From: Zygnema circumcarinatum SAG 698-1b
Lineage: Eukaryota; Plantae; Zygnematophyceae
Direction: 5' to 3'
Length of the DNA: 64,000 nt
NCBI GenBank assembly: GCA_037447605.1
Contig: CM074804.1
Span: 4,999,909 to 5,063,908 of the forward strand
The notes under the pieces were generated by a model that worked only from the letters and a program-made list of their open reading frames with translations, was not told the origin of the DNA and ran no database searches. This document shows positions 1 through 64,000 of the stretch, piece by piece. Within the stretch, counting starts at the first letter, position 1; every line of letters starts with the position of its first letter. The position numbers and the translations under genes were made by a program.

Positions 1-324
1 GCTCAGCTTCGCAAAAGTAACCCACAGGTGACGGGCCTGGGCCTACTCTCTCCAATCAATGGGAATCTCGTTAAGCTGCCTTTCGTCCTGCAGGACATGG
101 CAATACCTTTTTTTAGGTGCATGGCTGCCTTCAAATGCGTACGTGAATACGACGACATGCTCACAGGAGAATGTTCCTATTGTTGGCAGGCCTTCCAGAA
201 CATTCTGAAGCGAATGCTGGAAGCAGCAGGTCGCGGGTTCTGGAATGCGGACGAGGAGACCATGCGCAGACTCCGCGACCTTTACGCGGAAATGGATAAC
301 GAGCTCGAGGGGGTGAGGGTGTGA
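1..324 (+). CDS. CHLH: Last two exons (1-27, 190-324) of a Mg-chelatase subunit H / CobN-family protein, probably the CHLH2-type paralog; gene continues upstream of the window
   Basis: Splicing GT at 28 to AG at 188-189 gives AQLRKSNPQ|AFQNILKRMLEAAGRGFWNADEETMRRLRDLYAEMDNELEGVRV*. This matches the ChlH/BchH C-terminal motif NPxAF..ML.EA.GRG.W...L..LY...D..LEG. Confidence 0.85.
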   Translation, partial: AQLRKSNPQVTGLGLLSPINGNLVKLPFVLQDMAIPFFRCMAAFKCVREYDDMLTGECSYCWQAFQNILKRMLEAAGRGFWNADEETMRRLRDLYAEMDNELEGVRV

Positions 325-577: not shown

Positions 578-1470
578 CCACGTGGCATCGACCACGTTGT
601 CCGGCCTATGAAAAGTAGGGATGGCCGCGCTTGCGAAACTGAAATTCTAGATTATAAATAATCGATTTTAAATGAGGCGAAAAAGGACCTTTAAACGAAT
701 GAAGTGAAGGGGACGAGAGAGCTGGCCAGTGGAAGAACCGGAAGAGGACGAGGGGGAGGGAGGGACGGCGACGGAGGAAGAAAGCGCGACGTCATTAGGA
801 CGTCACCGAAACATGACGGCATACTGACGTCATCACGCTGTTGCGTCATCGTAACTTGACATGGCGTCATCGTATAATTTTAGGAAAATGATACCCCGTC
901 ACCCCATTTTAAATATCTCGTCCCCCTGATTTGCTTTTTGAGAGACCCAAATAAGGGGTGGAAATGACACTACCCAAAATTAATAATATTACAGCCATCC
1001 CTAATGACCAGTCAGCCCACAGCTGCGCCTCCCTCCCTCTCCCTGCCCTCCCTCCCTCCCTGCCCGGCGGCGGCCCCTCGTCCGGACCCCTCTCCGCGCG
1101 GTCCGCCAAGTGCCCGCGGCCTGCCCGCCCGTTCCCCGTTCCCCGCTCTCCCGTCACGTCGCGTCACTTCACTCATGCGGTCATGCCTCGCGCCGACCTC
1201 CGCCCCGGGAGGGACTCCCGCACCCCGACGCCACGTGGCGCTCGCACTGGTCGCCAGCTGTAGTCCCAACACCGCGGCCCGGCGCTTGCCACGCTCTCCT
1301 GCCGTACCGGACCAGACCGGACCGGACCGCGCGGCCGCGGCGGCGGGGGCGGTCGGTCGGTCATAGGCGCCACTACGGCTTCGGCGCGCGGGGGCGCGCG
1401 CCACGTGGCCGGCGGCAGATTGACATCGATCGTGATTTTGGCCTGCGCGAGTGGGATCGCGCCACGTGGA
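578..1470. promoter_or_regulatory. Cluster of G-box/ABRE palindromes upstream of the fasciclin gene
   Basis: CCACGTGGC at 578, GCCACGTGGC at 1230 and 1400, GCCACGTGG at 1461. Confidence 0.5.
885..975. mobile_element. Truncated, internally deleted copy of the MITE at 56891-57853
   Basis: AAAATGATACCCCGT..AAT A.CTCGTCCCCCT.ATT..TTTTTGAGA resembles ~57017-57075, and AAGGGGTGGAAATGACACTACCC resembles the right terminus at ~57831-57853. Confidence 0.65.
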
Positions 1471-1709
1471 CGCGACAAACGACCCGACCGACACGATCGC
1501 AGAGTCCGTATGGCGGCGCGTTCGGTCCGTTGCGGCGCTCCGGGTGGGTCCTTTGGCCCTTGGGCGGGGGAAAGGGGAAGGGAGGGAGGCCGCGGGGAAG
1601 CAGGGCTACTGCGGAGGAGGAGGAGGCGCAGGGAGGGGTGCATCGCGAGTGCGCGGCGGCAGGCGAGGCGAGGCGAGGGGAGAGGAGAGGAGAGGAGAGG
1701 GTGGAAGCA

Positions 1710-4700
1710 ATGGCCGCCATGGCCCCTGCGCGACAGGCCCTCGCCTGGTGCCTGCTGCTGCTCGCCGCCTCCGCTGTGGGAGTGTCAGCGCGCGGCCACC
1801 ACCGCGCGGCGGCGGCGGCAGTAGTGCTGAGTCCGCGCGCGGCGAGCATCGCGCAGAACTTGAGCGCGTACGACGCGTTCCTCTCGCTGTACCCGGCGGG
1901 CGCGGTGGCCGCGTACCTCGCGGGGCTGCGCAACGCGACCTTCCTCGTCCCCAACAACTTTGCGGTGGGGCTGCTCGCCAACAAGACGGCGGCGGCCGAC
2001 ATCGTGCGGCTTCGCGACAACTGGCTGCTCTACCTCACGCTGCCCGCGCGCCTCACACGCGCTGACTTCTTTGTGAGTGGCGGCTCTGGCAGGACGCGAA
2101 TCCTTTCTCCTGCGTGCTCGCCGCTGCATTGCGTCCTCCCTCCACCCCGCTAACCCTGATGTGAGTGGCGAGGCGTGCGCAGCTGTTCCTGAATAACACG
2201 GTGATCTACCCCTACCCGACGCTGTTCGGCATGCCCCTGTACGGCGAGGCGGTGCTGAACGGCATCTACTTCGTGGGCAGCAACCGCGTGCTTAACAACA
2301 ACGCGTACCTGAACCGCGCGGGCGTGTACAGCGACGCCGCGCTCGTCGTGCACGGCGTGGACAACTACCTCATGCCGCCCAACAACGCGCTCTTCGCCAA
2401 GCCCGCCGCCTTTCCGCCGCCCTTCCAGCCCAGTAAGCCGCCGCGCCCCCGCATCAACTTGCAAAACGTACAACGCAAGATTTGGGACAAGGCACAGTTT
2501 CAGACAGCACGTTGGACGTAGCAACGCCCAGATCCGTGACCGAGGTCGAGGGGTGATTCGGTTTTTTAATTGCTCGGTACTAATAATTTTAATTATAATT
2601 AGGTTTTTTTTCTTTTCCAGAATGTCAATTTTTTCTTTTTTCTTGTTCCAAAGGCCTTTGCGATCCTGGAGCTCCTCCATGATGTGTGCGCGTGCCCCTG
2701 ATCTCGCGGGTTTCGACCTCTGGGCCCCGCAGGTGCTTGCGGCGTCATCCAGGCGGGCTACTCGTATGAGAAAAACACCTACAGGCCGGGGCATGATTAC
2801 TACACCATCGACTTTTCGATCGTGCTCAATGTCTTTCACTGCGCACGGAACTGCACCGCCACGCCCTCCTGTCAAGGTTTCTCCGTTTTACGAAAAACCT
2901 GTTTCTTTAAGAACCGTCTCAGTCGGGCCCGCCCCTACAACGGAATCGACACATATGTCGAGTGCGTGGTGCCGTCGCCGGCGCCGCCACAGCCTCCGCC
3001 GCCGCCACCGTCGCCCCCGCCCCCGCCCTGTGAGGCTCCGGCGCTGCTCCATTGGGGATTGGGGGTTCAGGGGGTCGGTTAGGGCTAGGTGGATGGAGGC
3101 AGGGTTAAGGTTAGGGTTACGTTAGTGTTAGGGTTAGGATTTAGGTAAGGGTCAGGGTTAGAGTGGGGATTAGGGTTAGGGTAAGGGTTAGGTTCGGGTA
3201 GTGTTAGAGTCGTGTTAGGGCTTAGAGTTAGGAGTATGGCTCAGCATCAGGAAGGGTGGGAGTTTAGGGTCGCCGCCAGCGTCATGGAGGGTTAGGTTTG
3301 AGGTTAAAGTTAGAGCTAGGTTTAGCGTTAGGGTAGGGTTCGGGTTAGGTTAAGATTAGGGACAGGTTTAGTGTTAGGGTTAGGGTTCACGTAGGGGTAG
3401 GAATAGGGTTGGGGTTCGGACAGGGTTGAGGGTCTTGTCACAGATTAGGGTAAGGGTCAGGGGTCAGGGTTTAGGGTTAGGGTTAGGGTCAGGGTAGGGC
3501 CAGAGTATGGGGTAAAGGCCAGGGTTAGGATAAGGGTAGGGCTCGGTTTAAGAATGAGGGTCAGGCTCAGCATCAGGAAGGTTAGGGTTAGAGGTCACCG
3601 TTAGGGAGTGTTGGGGCTTAGATTAGGGTTAGGGTTCGTCGGAGGATTAGGGGCTAGGGTAGGATGAGGGTTAGGACTAGAGTTAGGGTAGGGATAGGTT
3701 TAGGGTTAGGAGTTAAAGTTAGGTCTAGGGCCAGGGCCAGGGCCAGGGCTAGGGCTAGGGTTAGGGTTAGGGTTAGGGTTAGGGTTAGGGTTAGGGTTAG
3801 GGTTAGGGTTAGGGTTAGGGTTAGGGTTAGGGTTAGGGTTAGGGTATAGGTTTAGTGTTGGGTTAGAGTTGAGGTGAGGGTTAGGGTTAGCGTCAGAGTT
3901 AGCGTTAGGGAGGGTCAGGGATTAGGTAGGGTCAGGGAAGGGCTAGGGTTCAGGTTAGGGTTAGCGCTAGGGTTTAGGGTTATGACCATGTTGAGGTTGT
4001 GTTCTGAGTTAGTGTTAGGCTTAGGCGCACAGATCTAGTAGTACGTTGGGGGCGGGGTTAGGAATAGGGAGGGGCTCGTGGATTCGTTCTTGATTCGTGT
4101 TGGCTGTCAATGTGTGATGACCTTGCGAGGAGAGCAAAGGAGGGTTCGCCTTTGTTCGTATGCTGATGTCTTCCCCACGTGGAGCTTGTGGTTGTTCTGC
4201 AGTCAAGGGGCAAACGCTGGTGAAGATTCCTTGGTTTTTGGGAATCACGAAAGCCAATGCGAGCAGGATAGTGGAGGAGGGGACCATCGTCTCGTGGGTG
4301 TGGGCTGACAAACTCCGTCACAGCATCCAAGGTGAGGAAAATCTGTAAATCAAAAATCCTGATTCGACAGTAAGTTTGACGATTTTCTTTCTACCTGCGT
4401 GAGATCAGGATTGATAGGGTGTCCCGTCTATTCTTCTACGCGTGGCGAGACAGTCTGTACATGAGAAATGCTAACGTTTTAGTTGTAAAGGAACAATGAA
4501 CACATACTCGCCTTTACTCATGAGATGAAGTGCAGAACCCTCAAATTCTTCGCTGCTCCCTAGTCTGCATCATTTCCTCGTTCGTCCTGGCGAGAGGCTC
4601 GTCCGTCACAAGTAGTGGAGGGTCTATTGCAGCAAGTCGCCAAGTCGGGCAGCTTCGGAGGGTCCTTCCTTTGACTCGCTGCGGGCGCTGTGCAGATATG

Positions 4701-6350
4701 AACACAACTCGCAACCTTTTTGTTGGACCGGGGGGTGGTCTCAACTTGGTGTCTGCGCCGTTCGTATTCAACTACACCTTCACCAAAGCGGGAATCTTCT
4801 ACTACAATGACGGAGCGTACAGTCTGAACATGCAAGGCATTATCACTGTGAAAGGTGGGCCTGAACTCCTTTCGCTCCAGAAAAACTTGCCCAAAAAATT
4901 AGTCAAAATTGTCAACTTTCCGATTCTGCTCTGCTGGAGGCACGAATTGAAGGGAGACAACTGATTCTGTATATGTTGTGTCGACGCGCAAACCTGTTTG
5001 AGACTTTCATCGATTTCTCAAAATCTGAAGTCCTCCTGGGTGTTGAGCTACCATGTGGCCAGCCTCAATTGATCCTTCAACTTCAGTCCAATCCAGCTTT
5101 TACCTCAAGATTCTGAGGGAAAGCCATTTATAAATGTAGAAAATTCCCAAACCCTTGGGACTCCACACGACGAGAGAGGTCTATCTCCGCAGACTTGGAG
5201 CACTCCTAGAGTTTTGGCTGTTTCTCAGCCTGAGCTGTTGGGTACTGCGAATAGTTTAGCGTAAACGTTAAACCTTCATTATCGCCTTTTTCTAGGGCTG
5301 GACCCTTTCTGCCTTAAAGGTAGATTCTATAATTGCGGCATCTTTGCATGTACCATGCAGGCGAGGGCCTTCCTGCCGTAACTGCATTCCATTCTTCGCT
5401 TCTCTTTGCCACCCCATCCCCCTTTTCCCAGCCATCCTTTATTTCTCCTTTCAGTAAGTAGGCTCACCTTAAACCCTGCAATAGAGAATCAAGCATTTAT
5501 AAACTACACTTCTCTCCCCATTCCATTCATTATCCATCTCAAACTTTTTTCCCTTCTCGATGACATTACTCTAAAGATATCGTCTATCACATTCGCTCAT
5601 GGACGTGCAGAGTGGATTCGTCACTGGTTAGAGCTCGGAGGTCCTGAATCCGTCGGCTTTAGTCGTATTAGAACTGTTGCGTTACCTTTTTTGGGGTTTC
5701 TTTGGAAACCTGAAAATTGTATGGCTCTGCGAGACATACAATGGAATGTCCTGGAACATATCCTTATCCTTATGGTTGCAGAACATACCTGCATAGGATA
5801 ACCCTAAGGGAAAAAGCGACGCTTGTTTATCTATCCATAATCGTAAATACAGCGGTTTCCCCATGTGTATGGTTTTCCTGTGTTCTAAATGCAACCTTTC
5901 TCTCTACTGCAAGCGAGAAAAATGTAAAACACTCTGATAAAAATTATTTGACTTGGTCTTCTGTTAGTTGATGTCCAGCTCACACTGCTCTGTTGCGGGT
6001 TTTCTTTGTGTTGGGAGGGCCCTATATCACTGCTCCATCTCTGCTGATCTTCGCCGCATTCGCTATCTTCCTCTCCTTCGCCTTCTTTCTCGGTACATAT
6101 GTTGGCAGGCGCTACTTCGCCCTCCTGTCAAAAGCCTCTAGCAGGATTCCGACGTGAACTCAACACCAACCGGCCGGGATATGACTACAGCATCTTCACA
6201 AGCAGGAAAAGGGGAAACTGTGCGGCGGCCTGCTTGCCTGATAGCAAGTGCCTTGGCTTCCTCGTGTATCAGAGCAAGTGCTATTTGAAGTATGCCTTGT
6301 CGGCAGCGAGGTTCCTTTTTGATGCGGAGATGTATGTGAAATGCGAATAG
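1710..6350 (+). CDS. Secreted mosaic protein, 479 aa: signal peptide - FAS1 (fasciclin) - PAN/apple - Pro-rich (SPPPP) - cupredoxin-like - PAN/apple. Exons 1710-2072, 2183-2432, 2733-3029, 4203-4331, 4696-4854, 6109-6350
   Basis: All junctions are GT-AG and in phase; the exons sum to 1440 nt ending in TAG. Motifs: signal peptide (ALAWCLLLLAASAVGVSA); FAS1 H1-like TFLVPNNFA and H2 VHGVDNYLMP; PAN1 NTYRPGHDY..CARNCTATPSCQGFS....CFFKN; cupredoxin VEEGTIVSWVWADKLRHSI..FNYTFTKAGIFYY..MQGIITV; PAN2 NTNRPGYDY..CAAACLPDSKCLGF....CYLK. Confidence 0.85.
3052..4070 (+). repeat. Intronic interstitial telomere-like array: degenerate (TTAGGG)n with a perfect 14-unit core at 3761-3844
   Basis: Directly visible. 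Variants TCAGGG, CTAGGG, CCAGGG, TTAGGA and TTAGAG flank the perfect core. The array lies inside intron 3 (3030-4202) of the mosaic gene. Confidence 0.95.
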
Positions 6351-18215: not shown

Positions 18216-21200
18216 TCAGACCACTTGTGGCAGGCCAAAACTCGGAGGTGGAGCCCATTCTGGCAGCGAGCTCAGAGGAACCGGCGGATCAAAGATGCGG
18301 TTGCTTATTGCCTCCTCCAAGTCTTCCTTCTCCACCATGAGGAAGGCGTCACCCTCATCGAAGAGGTTGCTTTTACTCGACAGTGGTTCAAGAACCTGCC
18401 AAGAAATCCACTTTCTGGATCACTTAACAGCATTTTCCATGCTCCATGCCACAAGTCAATAGCATCTTCCTCATCCAAAGTAGAACAGTTTTCCGGCAAG
18501 GTTTCAGAGTGCCATTGCATCAAAGAAAAAGGGGACTCACATCAAAATTGTTCGAGTGGTTGAAGCAGGTGCGCTTGAGGGCAGAGGCCAATGATGAAGC
18601 TAGGCCTGCCCCTGCAAGTGCTCCCAGTGCAACCCCTGTGTAACTTCCAATCTCCAGTCCAGCTGTTCCCAGACCCAACACAACGTTTGCCTCAGTAATC
18701 CCTTGTAAGGAATGGAAGCCCTTTGAACAAAATCTTTCTCTGGCAACATTTTAAAGTCAGCACACTGAAGTTTCAGACAACGGCCTTACACCCATAGGAT
18801 GCAAACCGCTAGGTACCTTTTGTATCTTTATGCAATTTGGTCGCAAAAAAACCACATGAGCTACAGTGCTATGAGAAAATCAGGACAGCAACTCTTCAGA
18901 AAAGTACTTGCTTTGGTTTGCTGAATAATCACAAAGTACACCTTACAAGATTTCCATCACAAGTTCAATGAACCATAGTAGCATATTTGAAATGCCTACA
19001 CAAACGCAGTGTCTGTTCGCATGACATTACGGTTTAAACAATATTGATTACAAAAGCCAAGTAGTTGAACACCTTACCGACTGAAAAGACGAGAGGACTT
19101 GCAAAGGGACCGCCAACGACACCTCCAGCTGTGGCTCCGACCAGGGTACTCACAACGATGGTTTTATTCAGCCACCTGCCTGGCTCTACCAAGCGCCTCT
19201 CAGGAGGCTGCTGCACATTCACTAGGCTCCATTTGTCAGGCTTCTCGATTTCAAAGTATTCAGTTTGTTCCAACTGATCCAACTGCGTCATTTCCAGTGA
19301 TCTCTTCCAACATCGAGCCGGACCCAATCCTACATCTGTACAAGATCCGGCGAAGGAGAAACTCAATTGATGAGCTCCAACAGAGAACAGCAAAGCTGGT
19401 TGCAGGGAATACAGCCAACCCCACTGCGAAGTACAGGAAGAAGTCAAGCTAGTCAATGAATAATCAGGGGTGACTTCACGGAATAGACTTCGTATGGACG
19501 GTGTAGGAGGTGTGGGAGTAAAACCGAGTTCAGTTGCTACATCCTTTGAAGTTGAATACTTCGGCAACAAGCTCTCCCCTCCTCGAAGAATATGGTGTGC
19601 TTGGCAGTTGCAGCTGATGGGAATAAGGGCTTCTTTACCGATCAAATGTCCATATTCTTCGGGAAACGGCTCACTAAGAACATCATCAATATCTTCCAGC
19701 TGGGAAGAACTTAAAATTGTGTCACCTACCAGGGGGCAGAGATTTCCGCTCCTTGAATCATTCAAATCTGCGAATGTCACTTGTGAGCACTCAGTTTTCG
19801 GTAGAACTTGAAGCACTTGCAGGAGTTCACCATTTGCCTCCACTACTGTCACCCCTTGTCTTTCGCTGACAGCTGAATCATCCTCCCATGGTTGTTCGGC
19901 CTTGAGCTCATTGGCAGGAATAAGAGCCCATGTGCTCATTGTAGGATCAGTATCGAGCTGAAATGAACCATTGGCTATATTACTCGGGGATGAATTCACC
20001 ACTTGCACTGCTTCGTCAAATGCTTTAGTTACGACTGCCTGCACCTGCGATTCTTCAAATTCGTCGGGTGCGAGGTGCTCATGCGAAACACTTATCTCGT
20101 CATTGTATTGAAACAATGACCCGTTGCCATCAGAACTCAGTCCATCCAACAGAAAGAGATCATTCTCTGTGGTTGATCCAGCCTTTGCTTCCCAAAATCC
20201 CTGTGATCCTGAACTAATTTCTGCCGCTAACTTTAGCTTACCCGTACTAGCAACACTATGAGAGTCTGTCTCTGTGTTCTCTGCGCATGGAATCTCGTCT
20301 TGGCTTGAGTCAGTGACCTTCATCAAACTTTCACCTTGCGGGAATACCATACTGCATTCACGGTTATCTTCAAAGGAACAGCCATCCCTTCCTGAAACGT
20401 GACCGGTAGCTTCACCTACACCTGAAGTTACGTGCTTATATACAACATTGGCTGACCCAGGGCCTCCTTCAACTCTCTTATCCTCATTGCCTTCTCTGCA
20501 AAAGCAATTTGAATTGATCTGCAAGTTAACCGCTGTGGCGTTATCACTTTGCGGCATGGAAGAAATTTCTTCGCTTTCAATATCACAGAGGCAGAAACTG
20601 ATGTCAAGAGCAGAAGCAAAGCCTTCAGCATCGAAGCCATCTAGTTGTTGAAGAGCATCACAACTCTCTGACATGCTTTCAGCATCATGGCAATCGATTG
20701 GTCGAGGGCTCTCAGCACAACGTTGGTTTGATGACCCGGCCACCTCTGAATCAACTTCTGAAGTCGCCAAACAGCACATTGTAGCCTCGCCTCCTTCCAC
20801 AACCGAAGCACTGCCCATCACCCTGCTTTCGAGGGAGGCAATACACCCATTATCTTCTATCATCCCTACCTCACAGGCAATTCCAGTTTCTGTTTCGCTC
20901 GCCAACAATTTTGCAGACCGAAGGGCATAATCCAAGGACTTGTTCACCTCAATCTCCCCTTGCGTTACTGGAACAACATGCCCATTTTCTAATGCCGTGT
21001 TGGCGGTGTGAAGTGAACCGTTATCATGGAATTCAGATTGCTTGCTTTCCTGCAATGTGACTATAGGCATTGCCTCAGTAGACAATTGAGCAGATGCTCG
21101 CATAACATTGGAAAATGTCCACCAACGACCCTGACACCAAGAAGCGTTGGAAGGAGCCTGGTCTGATACATTCCCATGAGTAGCTTCGACTTTAGCCGGA

Positions 21201-21970
21201 TTTTCAAAGGGTGGCACCTGGTCCAAATCTAGGTTTCCGCGGCTTTCAAATTGCTCTAACTGACCCACATTATCAGAGTCGGATTGTAATGCATTGTCAA
21301 TGCTGTTAGGTCGCAGGCGATCCGATACATCTTCAAGCTTTCCGATATCACTGATTTCACCAAAGCTGGCATCGTCCAGAAAGCTTGCATCATCATCAAA
21401 ACTGATATCTTGTGAGTTACTACAATCCTGCTGCTTCAACTTATCCTTACAACCGTTTGTACGAATGTGAGTTCGTTCTGCTGCATCCTCAATTCTTTCT
21501 TCTCTGTTCTCAGGGCTGCCACTCATAGACTTCATAGAGGATGCAACTGTAGCTAGGCGGGTAGTAACCATAGCCCCAACTGATAGAGTAGTGCCAATAT
21601 CTCCAAGAGTGAACCAACCAAAACCTGAGGCATTTCCTAGCCCAGACTGCTTCAACTTAGTGGCACGGGGGCTCCGCGGAAGGCTGCCATCCACCCGCTC
21701 CTCCACAGCGCAGCCCGTCTTCCCGTATGTATCATCTGAATCGGCATTCCCTTCAGTCTCGAGCAAAAGAGGCCTATGTACATCATGCTCAACCTCATCA
21801 GCATCCTCATCTGCGAATTGCGTTGATAAAGGCTGCAACCTTCCCTGCGATGGAGCATGCTCTCCATCGACATCCTTATAGCAAGCATCTCCCACAGAAT
21901 GGTTGCCAGACTGTTTCTCGATCTCGTCCATGTCAGGCTTCAACGAATTTGCCTCAAGGACAGGCTCCAT
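18216..21970 (-). CDS. Uncharacterised ~1,100-aa protein: one 2.9-kb exon encoding an acidic, Ser-rich disordered region, then glycine-zipper-like hydrophobic segments and a short tail
   Basis: 978-codon open frame 19034-21970 ending in IVVSTLVGATAGGVVGGPFASPLVFSVGK. Probable next exon (~18543-18740) reads NVVLGLGTAGLEIGSYTGVALGALAGAGLASSLA; probable last exon reads VLEPLSSKSNLFDEGDAFLMVEKEDLEEAIS..PQVV* (stop 18216-18218). The 3' exon structure is less certain than the long exon. Confidence 0.7.
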
Positions 21971-24369: not shown

Positions 24370-24543
24370 GGTTTCCAACCGGCGAATTCTGCTGCCCTGG
24401 TTTGCAACCAGCGAATTCTGCTGCCCGGGTTTCCAACCGGCGAATTCTGCTGCCCGGGTTTGCAACCAGCGAATTCTGCTGCCCGGGTTTCCAACCGGCG
24501 AATTCTGCTGCCCGGGTTTGCAACCGGCGAATTCTGCTACGCG
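24370..24543. repeat. Minisatellite of six 29-bp units, GGTTT(C/G)CAACC(G/A)GCGAATTCTGCTGCCCG, alternating A/B variants
   Basis: Directly visible; units are contiguous with no spacers. Confidence 0.95.
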
Positions 24544-25624
24544 GGTTTGCCGGCACGACGACGTCATACGGTACCTTATCTTATGTCATACCGTACGGAA
24601 CTTGTTAATTCGAAGACCTCTGTTTTTTGCGAAAAGATTGATAACGGGGTGAATTGGCATTGAAAAGAGGAACCATGGCCCACATTGACGACCTGCACGG
24701 CTCTCTTTTAGACCCGTGTTGCTAGGCCTAGAAAAAAAGTTCCGCGAATACGTTCCTAGGTCATTTGTAACTAGTTCACACTTGCTCTACAATTTTGTCT
24801 TTGTCCAAGACATTTGATGCCAATGCCATTGTGAGATAAATGCCAATTCACCCTCCTTGAATTTGAGTGTTGCAACAGTGTTCATGGGTGTACTGACAAC
24901 TCACAAACCCGGATGATCCACTCGGAACCCTCGACTTCCAACAGGTTTTCGTTTTGGCAGATGCGCAATGCTGATGCGCGAGACGTGACATGGAGGCTGA
25001 AAATATGGACAACCACTCCAAACTCACCTTCCGATGATCGAACAAGCATACGTTTGGCACAATGCCAGCCTCAAAATCACATTAACTACAAACACTGTAA
25101 TTCGGGCAACCTGTTTTCTCTCCTCTCAACCAACGATTGCTGCATTTGAACCATGACGTCGCACTGCGAGGACAACGTGAAACATTTTCAACTTTGGAAA
25201 CATGAGAAAAGCCCGCTTAATGAGAGAACAATCTCGAACGTCCACATGGAGCGGCTCTCTGCACTGCAACAAATTCACTCCCAACAGGAACTGGCCCTTT
25301 ATGCAAACAAAACTGCAGACCGACGATGGCCGTTCCATGCTGTCCATATCCTTCGGATCAGCCATGTGTCATAGAGAAAAGGCTTCAACAGGCCATAGTC
25401 ACGAATCCTGACGTGGAAATCGTCATGAAAAAGGGACTCGTACTTTACATGTGGCTAACGCGACATCGCAGAAATTGTAGAGCAGGTACCAGCCGGGCTC
25501 TAGAAGTGATAATAATCGCCTTCATATGTTTCATGTACAGCAACTCCGTTTAACAAAGTGCCTGTCAGCAATATGACAGCTCACAAACATTCCAAAAACT
25601 CCACAAAAGTGTCTCTGCGCCCCT

Positions 25625-61400: not shown

Positions 61401-62107
61401 AATCCGCCAAGGATCTGACCTTAGCTGCATGAAAGGCAAGGAAAGCATCTGTAGCGTCCTGACCCGCCAAATCTAAAATTGGAAGTTTCCCTCCCGGATG
61501 CTTCTCAAGCCATAATGTGACATCATACACCTGAGTAAAGAAAGCAGCATAAACAGATGAAGGAGAGTTAGTATAATGGGTTTCAATTTTTCAAAATCTA
61601 TGCACAATGGACAACTCGTGGCCAGAATTATGTGTAACAAGGTCAACGACTTGGTCCAGTCACTTAAGTCGGAGTTTCCTCTGCTGCTACTTTAATCGAC
61701 ACAACCGGTCATCCATATCGAAACAATCGCTTGAGACATTGCAAGCAAATTTCCATCCTTCGAGCCTCTGATCAAACAGTGTCCCATAATGAGACAGTTC
61801 TGAACCTACTGCGAGCAATCAGGCAGCGAGCAACAACAACCACCACTTCACAACTGAAGGTACAGACATGCCGACCAACGACAAGAACCTTCAACCTACA
61901 AAACCCTTGCTCCTTGCTCCTGCCTCAGTACCAGTCGTAGACACAACAAACCTTTCCGCAAATGGCGATCCAGCAGTCCTTCTGAGTATTGTGAGCCTCA
62001 AGTTCCTTAAGGGAGATTCGTCGAGCAGGTTCTACCGCCTCCTTGACAGCAACGTCCTCCTTGTGAGCATCTACCGGAGCAGGCAGCGCTTCCCCTCCCC
62101 TGCCCAT
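58477..62107 (-). CDS. SLD: Cytochrome b5-fused front-end desaturase, sphingolipid Delta8 (SLD)/Delta6 family
   Basis: Cytochrome b5 domain [19 protein letters not shown]|[13 protein letters not shown]; His boxes HDTGH, HNVHH and QIEHH; [26 protein letters not shown]; last exon [21 protein letters not shown]. Confidence 0.93.
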
Positions 62108-62282
62108 GGCTGCGAAAGCTGCAGCAACTCGCCCCTCTCCTGCACGCACGCAGGCAGGCAGGCGCCTTCTACTAGGCACCAGCGGCCGCAGACTGCTGCC
62201 AGGACTGCGCCGGAACGTACGGCCCGGCCTGGCCCGCGCGGGAGACCCCAATAATCCCGCCCCGCCCCGCCCCGCGACCGGA

Positions 62283-62330
62283 GGGACGGACGCACGGACG
62301 CACGGACGGACGGACGGACGGACGGACGGG
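62283..62330. repeat. (GGAC)n microsatellite upstream of the desaturase
   Basis: Directly visible: gggacggacgcacggacgcacggacggacggacggacggacggacggg. Confidence 0.85.
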
Positions 62331-64000
62331 AATGTCAAATTTGAAAAATTTCCACTGCCGTTCCAGCCTTCAGGAGGCGGAATTTTCGGGCGGCAGCCAA
62401 CGGGCAGCCCGTGACAGGAGCCCGGGCAGGGCCTGGGCGGGCATGGCATGGACATGGCCAGGCCATGACGCCATTGACATGTGAGATGGCATCACCCAAG
62501 CGCCGCACGAGCATGCCGTACAGTACATCATTCGTACATAACCGTACGGCGCGGAGCGAGCTGGGAGTGTCGACAGGGCGCGCGCGGTCTGACAGGGCGC
62601 CGGCGACGTGGAGCCCTGCGGGCCGTGCGGCGGGGCCCCGCGCCCCCGCCCCGGCCCGCCCAGCCCCGGCCGACGCGCGAGTCCGGTACCGTACCGTGCG
62701 GGGCCTTCCTTTTTGGAGCGGGAGGAAGGAGGCGACGACTGGGCGGGTGGCGAGCGCGGCGGGAACATGGACAGGACCGTAACATGAACGGACAACTGCG
62801 AAGAGACTTTGCTGGCCGTCTGCTGACGCACGCACGCCCGCCCGCCCGCTGTAAAATGGGCCATCGCGCAAGTGGGATTGGCCGTACGATCCACGATCCC
62901 GTGTCGTGGCGGCTTTGCCTGCGCGCCGCCCGCCTGCCCTGCAGCAGCCTCGCGCCGTACGGGGAGCGCCGTCGCCATCAGGTGACCGCTGCCCGCTCAC
63001 GTACGGACGGGGAACAGACGAACTGCCCTGTCTAAAAGTTTTCCCCATGAAAAATTTTCCTCGACCGACCCGCGGCGATTGCCGCATGGTCAGCTCTCGC
63101 CTTTCCCGGAAAAAAATCTGGACGCCTCGCTGCATGCGGTCCGCATCATGTCGGCGGATCTCACGAGGGCGGCAGCGCGTTGTCGCACTCGCTGCAGCAC
63201 CGCCCACTGCCGCCGTACGGTACCGCCCAGAAATCCTGATCTCGGGGGCTGAATCCTGGACGTAGCAAGACCGGGATGGACCAGAACCTGTATCGCACAA
63301 CAGTGCCGTACATGCCACGAGGTCGGTTTCTGGGTTTGTGGATCCACAAGGTCCTTCCTCCTTCGTCCGAAGTTACGACAAAGCCCTCGCACTAATGAAT
63401 TACAACTGATAAACTGCCACGTGGCCTCCCGTGATATTAGTTTGTTGATCGGGTGGGTGTACGGTGCGGTGTAAACCTGTGTAAGTACTGTAGAGGGTTA
63501 CGGTACGGAATCAGACTCGACCAGCTTTTGCGCCTGACCGTGAGGCGACGCGTCCCGAGAAAAAAATCTGGGCGCGTGCCGGCCACGGTGGGCCTGCGGT
63601 CGGAGCGCGCTGCCCGCGTGGCGGCGGGGCTTATCCGCGCGGCGAGGGGGGGAGGGCGGCCGGGATATTTTCCTGACAAGAATCCTACCGGCCACCGCCG
63701 AACGCGGCACCGACCACTCGTGACTTTTTGCTCGCTGCAGTCGACCGGCTGCCCGTCCTCCAGTGCGCAACGGCCACGTGCACACATGTTGGCTTCGACG
63801 AAGGCTCGCAGTCTAATGCACGGCGCTGGACCGACAAGATCTGGGTCCTCGGAGATTTTTTCCACACACGTGGACAGGTCCATAGGGCACCGTACCGTAG
63901 CGTAAGGGAAAAAAAGGTTTAGGTCCCACAATGGCGGCCCTCCCCTGCCCCAAGCGGAAGCATCCTCGATCCAACGGTAGCCTGGCGCTTCTGGGAAATT

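Follow-up and report, generated by a model that had tools for sequence, protein, structure and literature searches.

The locus considered here raises a question of assembly: does the genome of the alga Zygnema circumcarinatum SAG 698-1b hold a single gene in which a fasciclin-type domain, two cysteine-rich PAN domains, a proline-rich spacer and a cupredoxin-type fold are joined in one secreted chain, and what might such a protein do? The gene in question lies at 1710-6350 on the plus strand of a 64,000-nucleotide stretch of contig CM074804.1 (positions 4,999,909 to 5,063,908 of assembly GCA_037447605.1; hereafter the window), where the original prediction had placed a secreted mosaic of the order FAS1, PAN, extensin-like linker, cupredoxin and PAN. 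We think it probable, though well short of certain, that one nuclear six-exon gene encodes a 479-residue secreted, non-enzymatic mosaic glycoprotein, which would act as a multivalent adhesion protein of the wall or matrix and would have been put together by phase-1 exon shuffling.

The mechanical six-frame list of open reading frames (ORFs), on inspection, does split this gene into small unrelated ORFs, as had been said of it. Rebuilt from the sequence, the gene model has the following parts, given here together with the one intron that bears on its unity:

Exon 1, 1710-2072, plus strand, 363 nucleotides (nt), phase 0-0: start codon, signal peptide (approximately the first 27 codons) and N-terminal half of the FAS1-like domain.
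Exon 2, 2183-2432, plus strand, 250 nt, phase 0-1: C-terminal half of the FAS1-like domain, with the H2-type motif, PP and a short Pro-rich tail.
Exon 3, 2733-3029, plus strand, 297 nt, symmetric phase 1-1: PAN/apple domain 1 (six Cys) and, at ~2969-3029, the Pro-rich linker with an SP5-type run.
Intron 3, 3030-4202, plus strand, 1173 nt: degenerate TTAGGG-type array at 3101-3982 with a near-perfect core at ~3758-3845 (Tandem Repeats Finder, TRF, and the sequence itself).
Exon 4, 4203-4331, plus strand, 129 nt, phase 1-1: N-terminal half of the cupredoxin-like domain, ending at its sole retained His (HSIQ).
Exon 5, 4696-4854, plus strand, 159 nt, phase 1-1: C-terminal half of the cupredoxin-like domain.
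Exon 6, 6109-6350, plus strand, 242 nt, phase 1 to stop: PAN/apple domain 2 (six Cys).

Together the six exons sum to 1440 nt, or 479 codons plus a TAG stop, and a script check found GT..AG at all introns, exon start phases of 0, 0, 1, 1, 1 and 1, and internal stops in none of the exons. The predicted protein opens with a hydrophobic core (12-residue Kyte-Doolittle maximum of 2.5) followed by a small-residue cleavage-type site, and it carries nine N-glycosylation sequons. Its 12 cysteines all lie inside the two PAN domains, the mature pieces being otherwise Cys-free. The chain stops one residue past the last PAN cysteine and so has no glycosylphosphatidylinositol (GPI) signal, transmembrane segment or hydrophobic tail.

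An independent copy of the gene lies on a 5.5-kb Logan contig, here called L001 (run SRR9302961, 41% GC). It was reached with a profile of the two window PAN domains, run against 1.84 billion representative proteins, in which one entry, P0085, stood out with 70.6 bits in one domain; this 171-residue ORF fragment is located on L001. There P0085 occupies 2811-3326, running from intron 2 via exon 3 and intron 3 into exon 4, which it enters in the wrong frame. Entries of this kind show how intron-containing algal genes can surface as misleading fragments in ORF-based protein collections. The L001 locus is orthologous to that of the window, since the same neighbours flank it on both sides: upstream, the last Mg-chelatase exon (window 187-315) is 77% identical to its counterpart on L001, where the gene call has a Pfam CobN-Mg_chel match, and downstream a gene on the minus strand of L001 corresponds to the Myb/PHD gene of the window (34.7-37.2 kb, minus strand). 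In tblastn comparisons, every window exon found its place on the plus strand of the contig:

Exon 1, L001 2231-2470, plus strand: 41% identity, E 6e-18.
Exon 2, L001 2560-2799, plus strand: 48% identity, E 3e-23.
Exon 3, L001 2898-3128, plus strand: 43% identity, E 2e-18.
Exon 4, L001 3298-3408, plus strand: 43% identity, E 3e-8.
Exon 5, L001 3491-3631, plus strand: 49% identity, E 5e-14.
Exon 6, L001 3868-4095, plus strand: 25-31% identity, E 2e-6.

An in-phase model of the L001 gene has exons of 333, 250, 297, 129, 165 and 230 nt, with an optional exon of 48 nt ahead of the final one, and introns of 80, 92, 88, 67 and 114/68 nt, so that all six exons fall within ~2 kb. Exons 2, 3 and 4 are equal in length between the two loci (250, 297 and 129 nt), the intron phases match, and the signal peptide is encoded by exon 1 only in both; the L001 protein has five N-glycosylation sequons. 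The gene diverges fast, at 40-49% identity between window and L001 against 77% for the adjoining chelatase exon. With all six exons collinearly matched in an independent syntenic contig, the comparison confirms, beyond chance, that the six-exon gene is real, and with the rebuilt model it bears out the earlier claim of six exons joining in phase into a 479-residue protein with a signal peptide. The optional exon (L001 3756-3803, phase 1-1) is a candidate mini-exon that would form a second short Pro-rich linker between the cupredoxin-like part and PAN 2, with the frame kept whether or not it is used; no convincing candidate for its counterpart was seen in window intron 5 (1254 nt).

Among the domains, the two PAN/apple modules are solid. 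The window copies score just under the Pfam PAN_4 cut-off of 27, with 26.4 bits (E 7e-6) for PAN 1 in exon 3 and 23.6 bits (E 5.5e-5) for PAN 2 in exon 6, while the L001 copies clear the PAN_1 cut-off of 21.4 with 22.7 and 26.7 bits, respectively. All four copies, two per species, share six invariant cysteines, the number in apple-type domains, and a profile built from both window copies finds 744 proteins (E<=1e-3), PAN_4 being present in 143 of the 146 best matches scanned. The PAN/apple fold packs a central helix against an antiparallel sheet. An AlphaFold2 (AF2) model of exon 6, with five strands and one helix, reached a mean predicted local distance difference test score (pLDDT) of 68 and a predicted template modelling score of 0.60. 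Searched with Foldseek, it matched almost only PAN/apple structures, among them plasminogen (the best, template modelling score 0.60), Eimeria PAN, the HGF N domain, SRK, MIC4 and factor XI, at weak E-values of 0.06-1. These results agree with the original prediction of two Cys-rich PAN/apple domains. Within the window protein the two copies are 38% identical (E 6e-12); as window PAN 1 is nearer to L001 PAN 1 (43%) than to its own PAN 2, the PAN duplication is older than the species split.

For exons 4-5, three agreeing lines of weak to moderate strength point to a cupredoxin fold. In a PDB search with an exon 4 profile, the top match was 5fc9 (E 0.039), a protein with a blue (type 1) copper domain, and the alignment extends as far as the first ligand His. 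An exon 5 profile matches the C-terminal strands of cupredoxin domains in many copper nitrite reductases (E 0.13-1.5), so that two adjacent exons each match the corresponding half of the fold. Finally, in an Atlas feature search, exon 5 scored 0.95-0.88 to copper oxidase, Copper-bind and Cupredoxin_1 clusters, the best with 194 shared features. Of the type-1 ligands His, Cys, His and Met, alignments show that only the first His is retained in both species: a conserved Asp stands in place of the ligand Cys, the second His has no counterpart, and at the position of the Met the window has Met and L001 has Leu. As the copper-binding Cys and the second His are gone in both species, there is no blue-copper site. 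Exons 4-5 are Cys-free in both species, which rules out a module of the plant phytocyanin type, and no Pfam Cu_bind_like match was obtained on the pieces of either species. Exons 4-5 thus probably share the cupredoxin fold without its copper site; the predicted fold stands at that strength, with the copper ligands lost and the phytocyanin type set aside.

The linker was confirmed in part. At the end of exon 3, the window protein has ~20 residues with an extensin-like SP5-type run, whereas the corresponding stretch of L001, in an exon of the same length (297 nt), is Pro-rich with SPP/PP motifs only. Comparing the two sequences, the spacer is conserved and the extensin motif is not, so the SPPPP hydroxyproline-type linker of the original prediction holds for the window and does not extend to L001.

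The weakest of the domain calls, though one that we still regard as likely, is a FAS1 domain in exons 1-2. Such domains are described by conserved H1 and H2 regions and a central YH motif (PMC6032426). By reading, the two exons hold an H1-type motif (T/S-x-L-[VI]-P-N-x-F-A-V), which carries an N-glycosylation sequon, and an H2-type motif ([VI]-H-G-[VI]-D-N ... P-P), in the correct order and conserved in both species. The top PDB match of a two-sequence exon 2 profile is a FAS1 protein (6kgx_bH) aligned at the H2 region, at a non-significant E of 0.58. In the Atlas feature search with exon 1, each of the ten best named matches is a Fasciclin cluster; the score of 0.85, on 114 shared features, is one that shuffled sequences often reach.

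Several results tell against this account of the gene and its modules. No product of the gene from the window species occurs in the 15-billion-protein collection, and the relative's only entry there is the ORF fragment P0085, which reads through intron 3. The PDB and Atlas matches for FAS1 and for cupredoxin each lie below significance; Pfam scans of the exon 4 and exon 5 pieces of both species, each piece half a domain, found no cupredoxin family; and the SP5 motif, on which the idea of hydroxyproline-linked glycans is based, is not conserved in the ortholog. For the FAS1-like part, Pfam scans of the exon 1 and exon 2 pieces of both species gave no Fasciclin match (PF02469) at E<=10, each piece again being half a domain, here split by intron 1. 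When the exon 1 and exon 2 sequences of each species were searched singly against the PDB by phmmer, the matches were noise only (such as eIF2B, COX-2 and phosphomannomutase), and an AF2 model of exon 1 alone was unusable (pLDDT 43.5).

It is from the last group of results that the best-surviving alternative draws, namely that there is one gene in which exons 1-2 encode an unrelated or new fold with FAS1-like short motifs, the architecture then being unknown domain, PAN, cupredoxin-like and PAN. We consider this unlikely, if not lightly set aside. Neither half yields a Pfam Fasciclin match even at E 10 in two species, the PDB phmmer and profile searches gave noise apart from the one FAS1 protein, word searches brought no relative of exon 1, the Atlas score falls within the range of shuffled sequences, and the central YH motif is not kept in exons 1-2. 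The missing weak hidden Markov model matches are expected, however, because the domain is cut in two. The uniform naming of the ten best Atlas matches likewise speaks for FAS1, and the sole family-like PDB match of exon 2 comes from a FAS1 protein, with the alignment falling exactly on the H2 motif and the PP after it. Both motifs are conserved between the two species, and their order and spacing, with a module size of ~145 residues, fit FAS1 (PMC6032426). The fasciclin assignment of the original prediction is therefore kept as likely and as not statistically established, resting on the H1/H2-type motifs, the Atlas matches and the PDB alignment, with no Pfam match on either half.

How widely is this combination of domains found? 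Among the 150 best PAN matches, phmmer searches with exons 1, 2, 4 and 5 found nothing shared, the P0085 locus excepted, and neither Fasciclin nor cupredoxin families are among the families listed (25 of 28 and 25 of 29) for the 146 PAN relatives scanned with Pfam. Word-index protein searches were equally barren: with exon 1 in its 347-residue ORF, residues 201-321 gave no match at E<=1e-3 among 8000 candidates scored and residues 243-321 none at E<=10, and exon 5 in its 144-residue ORF gave no candidate. When metagenomes were scanned with alignments of exon 2 and of exon 3, there were pattern matches but no confirmed relatives. A broad review of FAS1 names neither PAN nor cupredoxin as a partner domain (PMC6032426). 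We thus found no other instance beyond the window species and its L001 relative in protein, metagenome and literature searches, which did not include a domain-architecture database. The combination is unusual, as had been predicted, and this FAS1-like, PAN and cupredoxin-like mosaic appears to be narrowly distributed, being present in at least two species, where it occupies the same place on the chromosome.

Among full-length proteins, exon 3 is best matched by P0026, a 656-residue EukProt transcriptome protein (39.7 bits in one domain), which consists of a run of PAN domains with long SPPPP-type spacers, each PAN opening with the A-C-G-type start of exon 3. It resembles exon 3 in that start and in the spacers and differs from the window protein in having PAN domains only, without a match to exons 1, 2, 4 or 5. 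As an observation in its own right, a PAN domain with an extensin-like spacer looks like a building block reused in at least one other eukaryote.

Likenesses to known systems are of plan and of parts. The closest working analogue is CBEL (cellulose-binding elicitor lectin) of Phytophthora parasitica, in which a unit of CBM1 plus PAN/Apple is repeated twice and which serves as a versatile adhesin, functioning in wall deposition and adhesion to cellulose (PMC3532174). CBEL and the oomycete CBM1-PAN/Apple proteins share with the predicted window protein the character of a secreted non-enzymatic wall glycoprotein and a two-unit layout (X-PAN, linker, Y-PAN). They differ in that the partners are CBM1 there and FAS1-like and cupredoxin-like modules here, and in belonging to an oomycete rather than a green alga; no sequence relationship was seen outside the PAN fold, and no Pfam CBM1 match was found on any piece of window or L001. 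The analogy would thus be one of plan and not of family.

Volvox algal-CAM and the plant FLAs, in turn, are secreted proteins with FAS1 domains and proline-rich, hydroxyproline-glycosylated regions, and are implicated in adhesion and wall function (PMC6032426). As in the window protein, FAS1 is paired with a Pro-rich region, but in algal-CAM and the FLAs one or two such domains go with PAST-rich regions and often with a GPI anchor, and PAN and cupredoxin domains are absent. The window protein has one weakly supported FAS1-like domain, no GPI signal, no AGP-type PAST-rich glycomodules and a linker of ~20 residues. ENODLs, which are phytocyanin-type chimeric AGPs, are extracellular cupredoxin folds that lack copper ligands and are linked to glycosylated regions rich in proline. 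With the window protein they would have in common a surface cupredoxin devoid of copper. The window module is nevertheless unlike that of an ENODL: it has no phytocyanin disulfide, its weak matches are to plastocyanin/amicyanin-type proteins and nitrite reductase rather than Cu_bind_like, it sits between PAN domains and it has no GPI anchor.

Taken in order, the modules would be a signal peptide, a FAS1-like domain, PAN/apple 1, a Pro-rich linker, a copper-less cupredoxin-like domain and PAN/apple 2, with no anchor, which may be read as two units of a binding module plus a PAN joined by a stiff proline-rich spacer. The protein would enter the secretory pathway and, with its nine sequons, be N-glycosylated, three disulfides would lock each PAN domain, and the spacer of the window species probably bears hydroxyproline-linked glycans. 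In the wall, sheath or mucilage it could then sit as a multivalent cross-linker or adhesin, its PAN domains binding glycans or proteins and its FAS1-like and cupredoxin-like domains adding protein-binding surfaces. A role in the wall, in adhesion or in mucilage, as originally proposed, is a reasonable inference. As to origin, every module boundary past the FAS1-like part is a phase-1 intron: exons 3, 4 and 5 and the L001 mini-exon are symmetric 1-1, and PAN 2 is a single phase-1 exon. Because the modules are bounded by phase-1 introns and the PAN domains are old single-exon paralogues, exon shuffling and duplication would have built the mosaic before the two species split.

Plant S-locus receptor kinases contain PAN domains, and ENODLs and FLAs serve plant receptor kinases. 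A second alternative accordingly keeps one gene and gives it mainly a part in signalling or recognition, either as a secreted ligand or co-receptor, as ENODLs and FLAs are for receptor kinases, or as a mating or self-recognition factor. The glycoproteins of plant surface signalling have FAS1 modules (PMC6032426) and copper-less cupredoxin-like modules as their protein parts, PAN domains are found in algal and plant receptor ectodomains (PMC12757656), and those of SRK are among the structural matches of the exon 6 model. The fast evolution of the gene (40-49% against 77% for the chelatase exon), frequent in recognition proteins, would suit this idea, but it is equally typical of wall proteins. 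The protein has no kinase, transmembrane segment or GPI anchor, and its Cys-free cupredoxin-like module is not of the phytocyanin type, matching instead bacterial/archaeal-type blue copper proteins and nitrite reductases. The data do not separate a signalling from a structural role; in our judgement a mainly signalling function is improbable, and an adhesion protein of the wall or matrix stays the preferred reading.

There remains the question of whether the locus is one gene or two, which turns on intron 3. Its array (3101-3982) covers ~880 bp with a period of 6, 148 copies and 64% matches by TRF, and the core at ~3758-3845 holds ~14 near-perfect units, the G-rich strand being the sense strand. 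The counterpart of this intron in L001 is 88 nt long and array-free, so the array was gained or expanded inside intron 3 in the window lineage. A terminator, a promoter, a start codon and a signal peptide would not fit into that 88-nt intron, and this makes a single gene, rather than two, well supported. It is accordingly very improbable that there are two adjacent genes, one with a signal peptide, FAS1-like domain, PAN and Pro-rich tail ending at a stop at 3080-3082 and the other with the cupredoxin-like domain and PAN, the array being a spacer, a false assembly join or an old chromosome-end fusion: read-through of the exon 3 donor does meet a stop after 17 codons (ORF 2822..3082), the ~880 bp of TTAGGG-type repeats between the halves has its G-rich strand oriented as at a chromosome end, bulk GC falls from ~65% before the array to ~47% after it, and each half ends in a PAN domain, as tandem duplicate genes would, but the same junction in the syntenic ortholog is a GT..AG phase-1 intron, in neither species does exon 4 encode a separate signal peptide, though it lies upstream of a disulfide-rich PAN domain, and GC content at third codon positions (GC3) is 0.73 and 0.72 on the two sides of intron 3. 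Across exons 1-6, GC3 runs 0.89, 0.96, 0.73, 0.72, 0.62 and 0.63, so the fall in GC is a smooth 5' to 3' gradient, which runs out of a GC-rich island at ~900-2400. A chimeric assembly or chromosome-end fusion at the array was considered as such and is rejected on this smooth gradient together with the 88-nt L001 intron.

That island, which spans the promoter, exon 1 and exon 2 of the gene, is one of two in the window (900-2400 and 62000-64000), with 62-74% GC against a background of ~46%. Beyond the gene, spacing differs sharply between the loci: on L001 the Myb/PHD counterpart begins ~300 bp past the stop of the gene (L001 4100-4390), whereas in the window the gap is ~28 kb (~6400-34700), which suggests that the window lineage gained a large insertion or that its genome expanded. 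The gap includes a 978-codon ORF (19034-21970, minus strand) without a Pfam family. Pfam scans of seven long ORFs in other parts of the window likewise returned no families. A tandem repeat at 24370-24550 has a 29-nt unit in 6.2 copies with 92% matches (TRF).

The individual modules of the protein are ordinary, and no long-standing open question is touched by the gene. A more ambitious proposal, which we rate as improbable, is that the protein is a lineage-restricted adhesin of algae near the land-plant line, uniting an FLA-type FAS1 and an ENODL-type copper-less cupredoxin, each paired with a lectin-like PAN, by phase-1 exon shuffling like that of animal matrix proteins. If true, the gene would be a rare and clear example of an extracellular matrix protein built in the green lineage by exon shuffling of the metazoan kind, and would offer a handle on how wall-sensing modules first combined. 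More generally, secreted adhesion and lectin mosaics shape the adhesion of cells to one another, to surfaces and to the cells' own walls, and such proteins are little known in the algae closest to land plants. The gene is thus a candidate for wall and mucilage proteomics and for binding assays, and it would show how new surface proteins are assembled from old parts, with phase-1 introns as the module boundaries.

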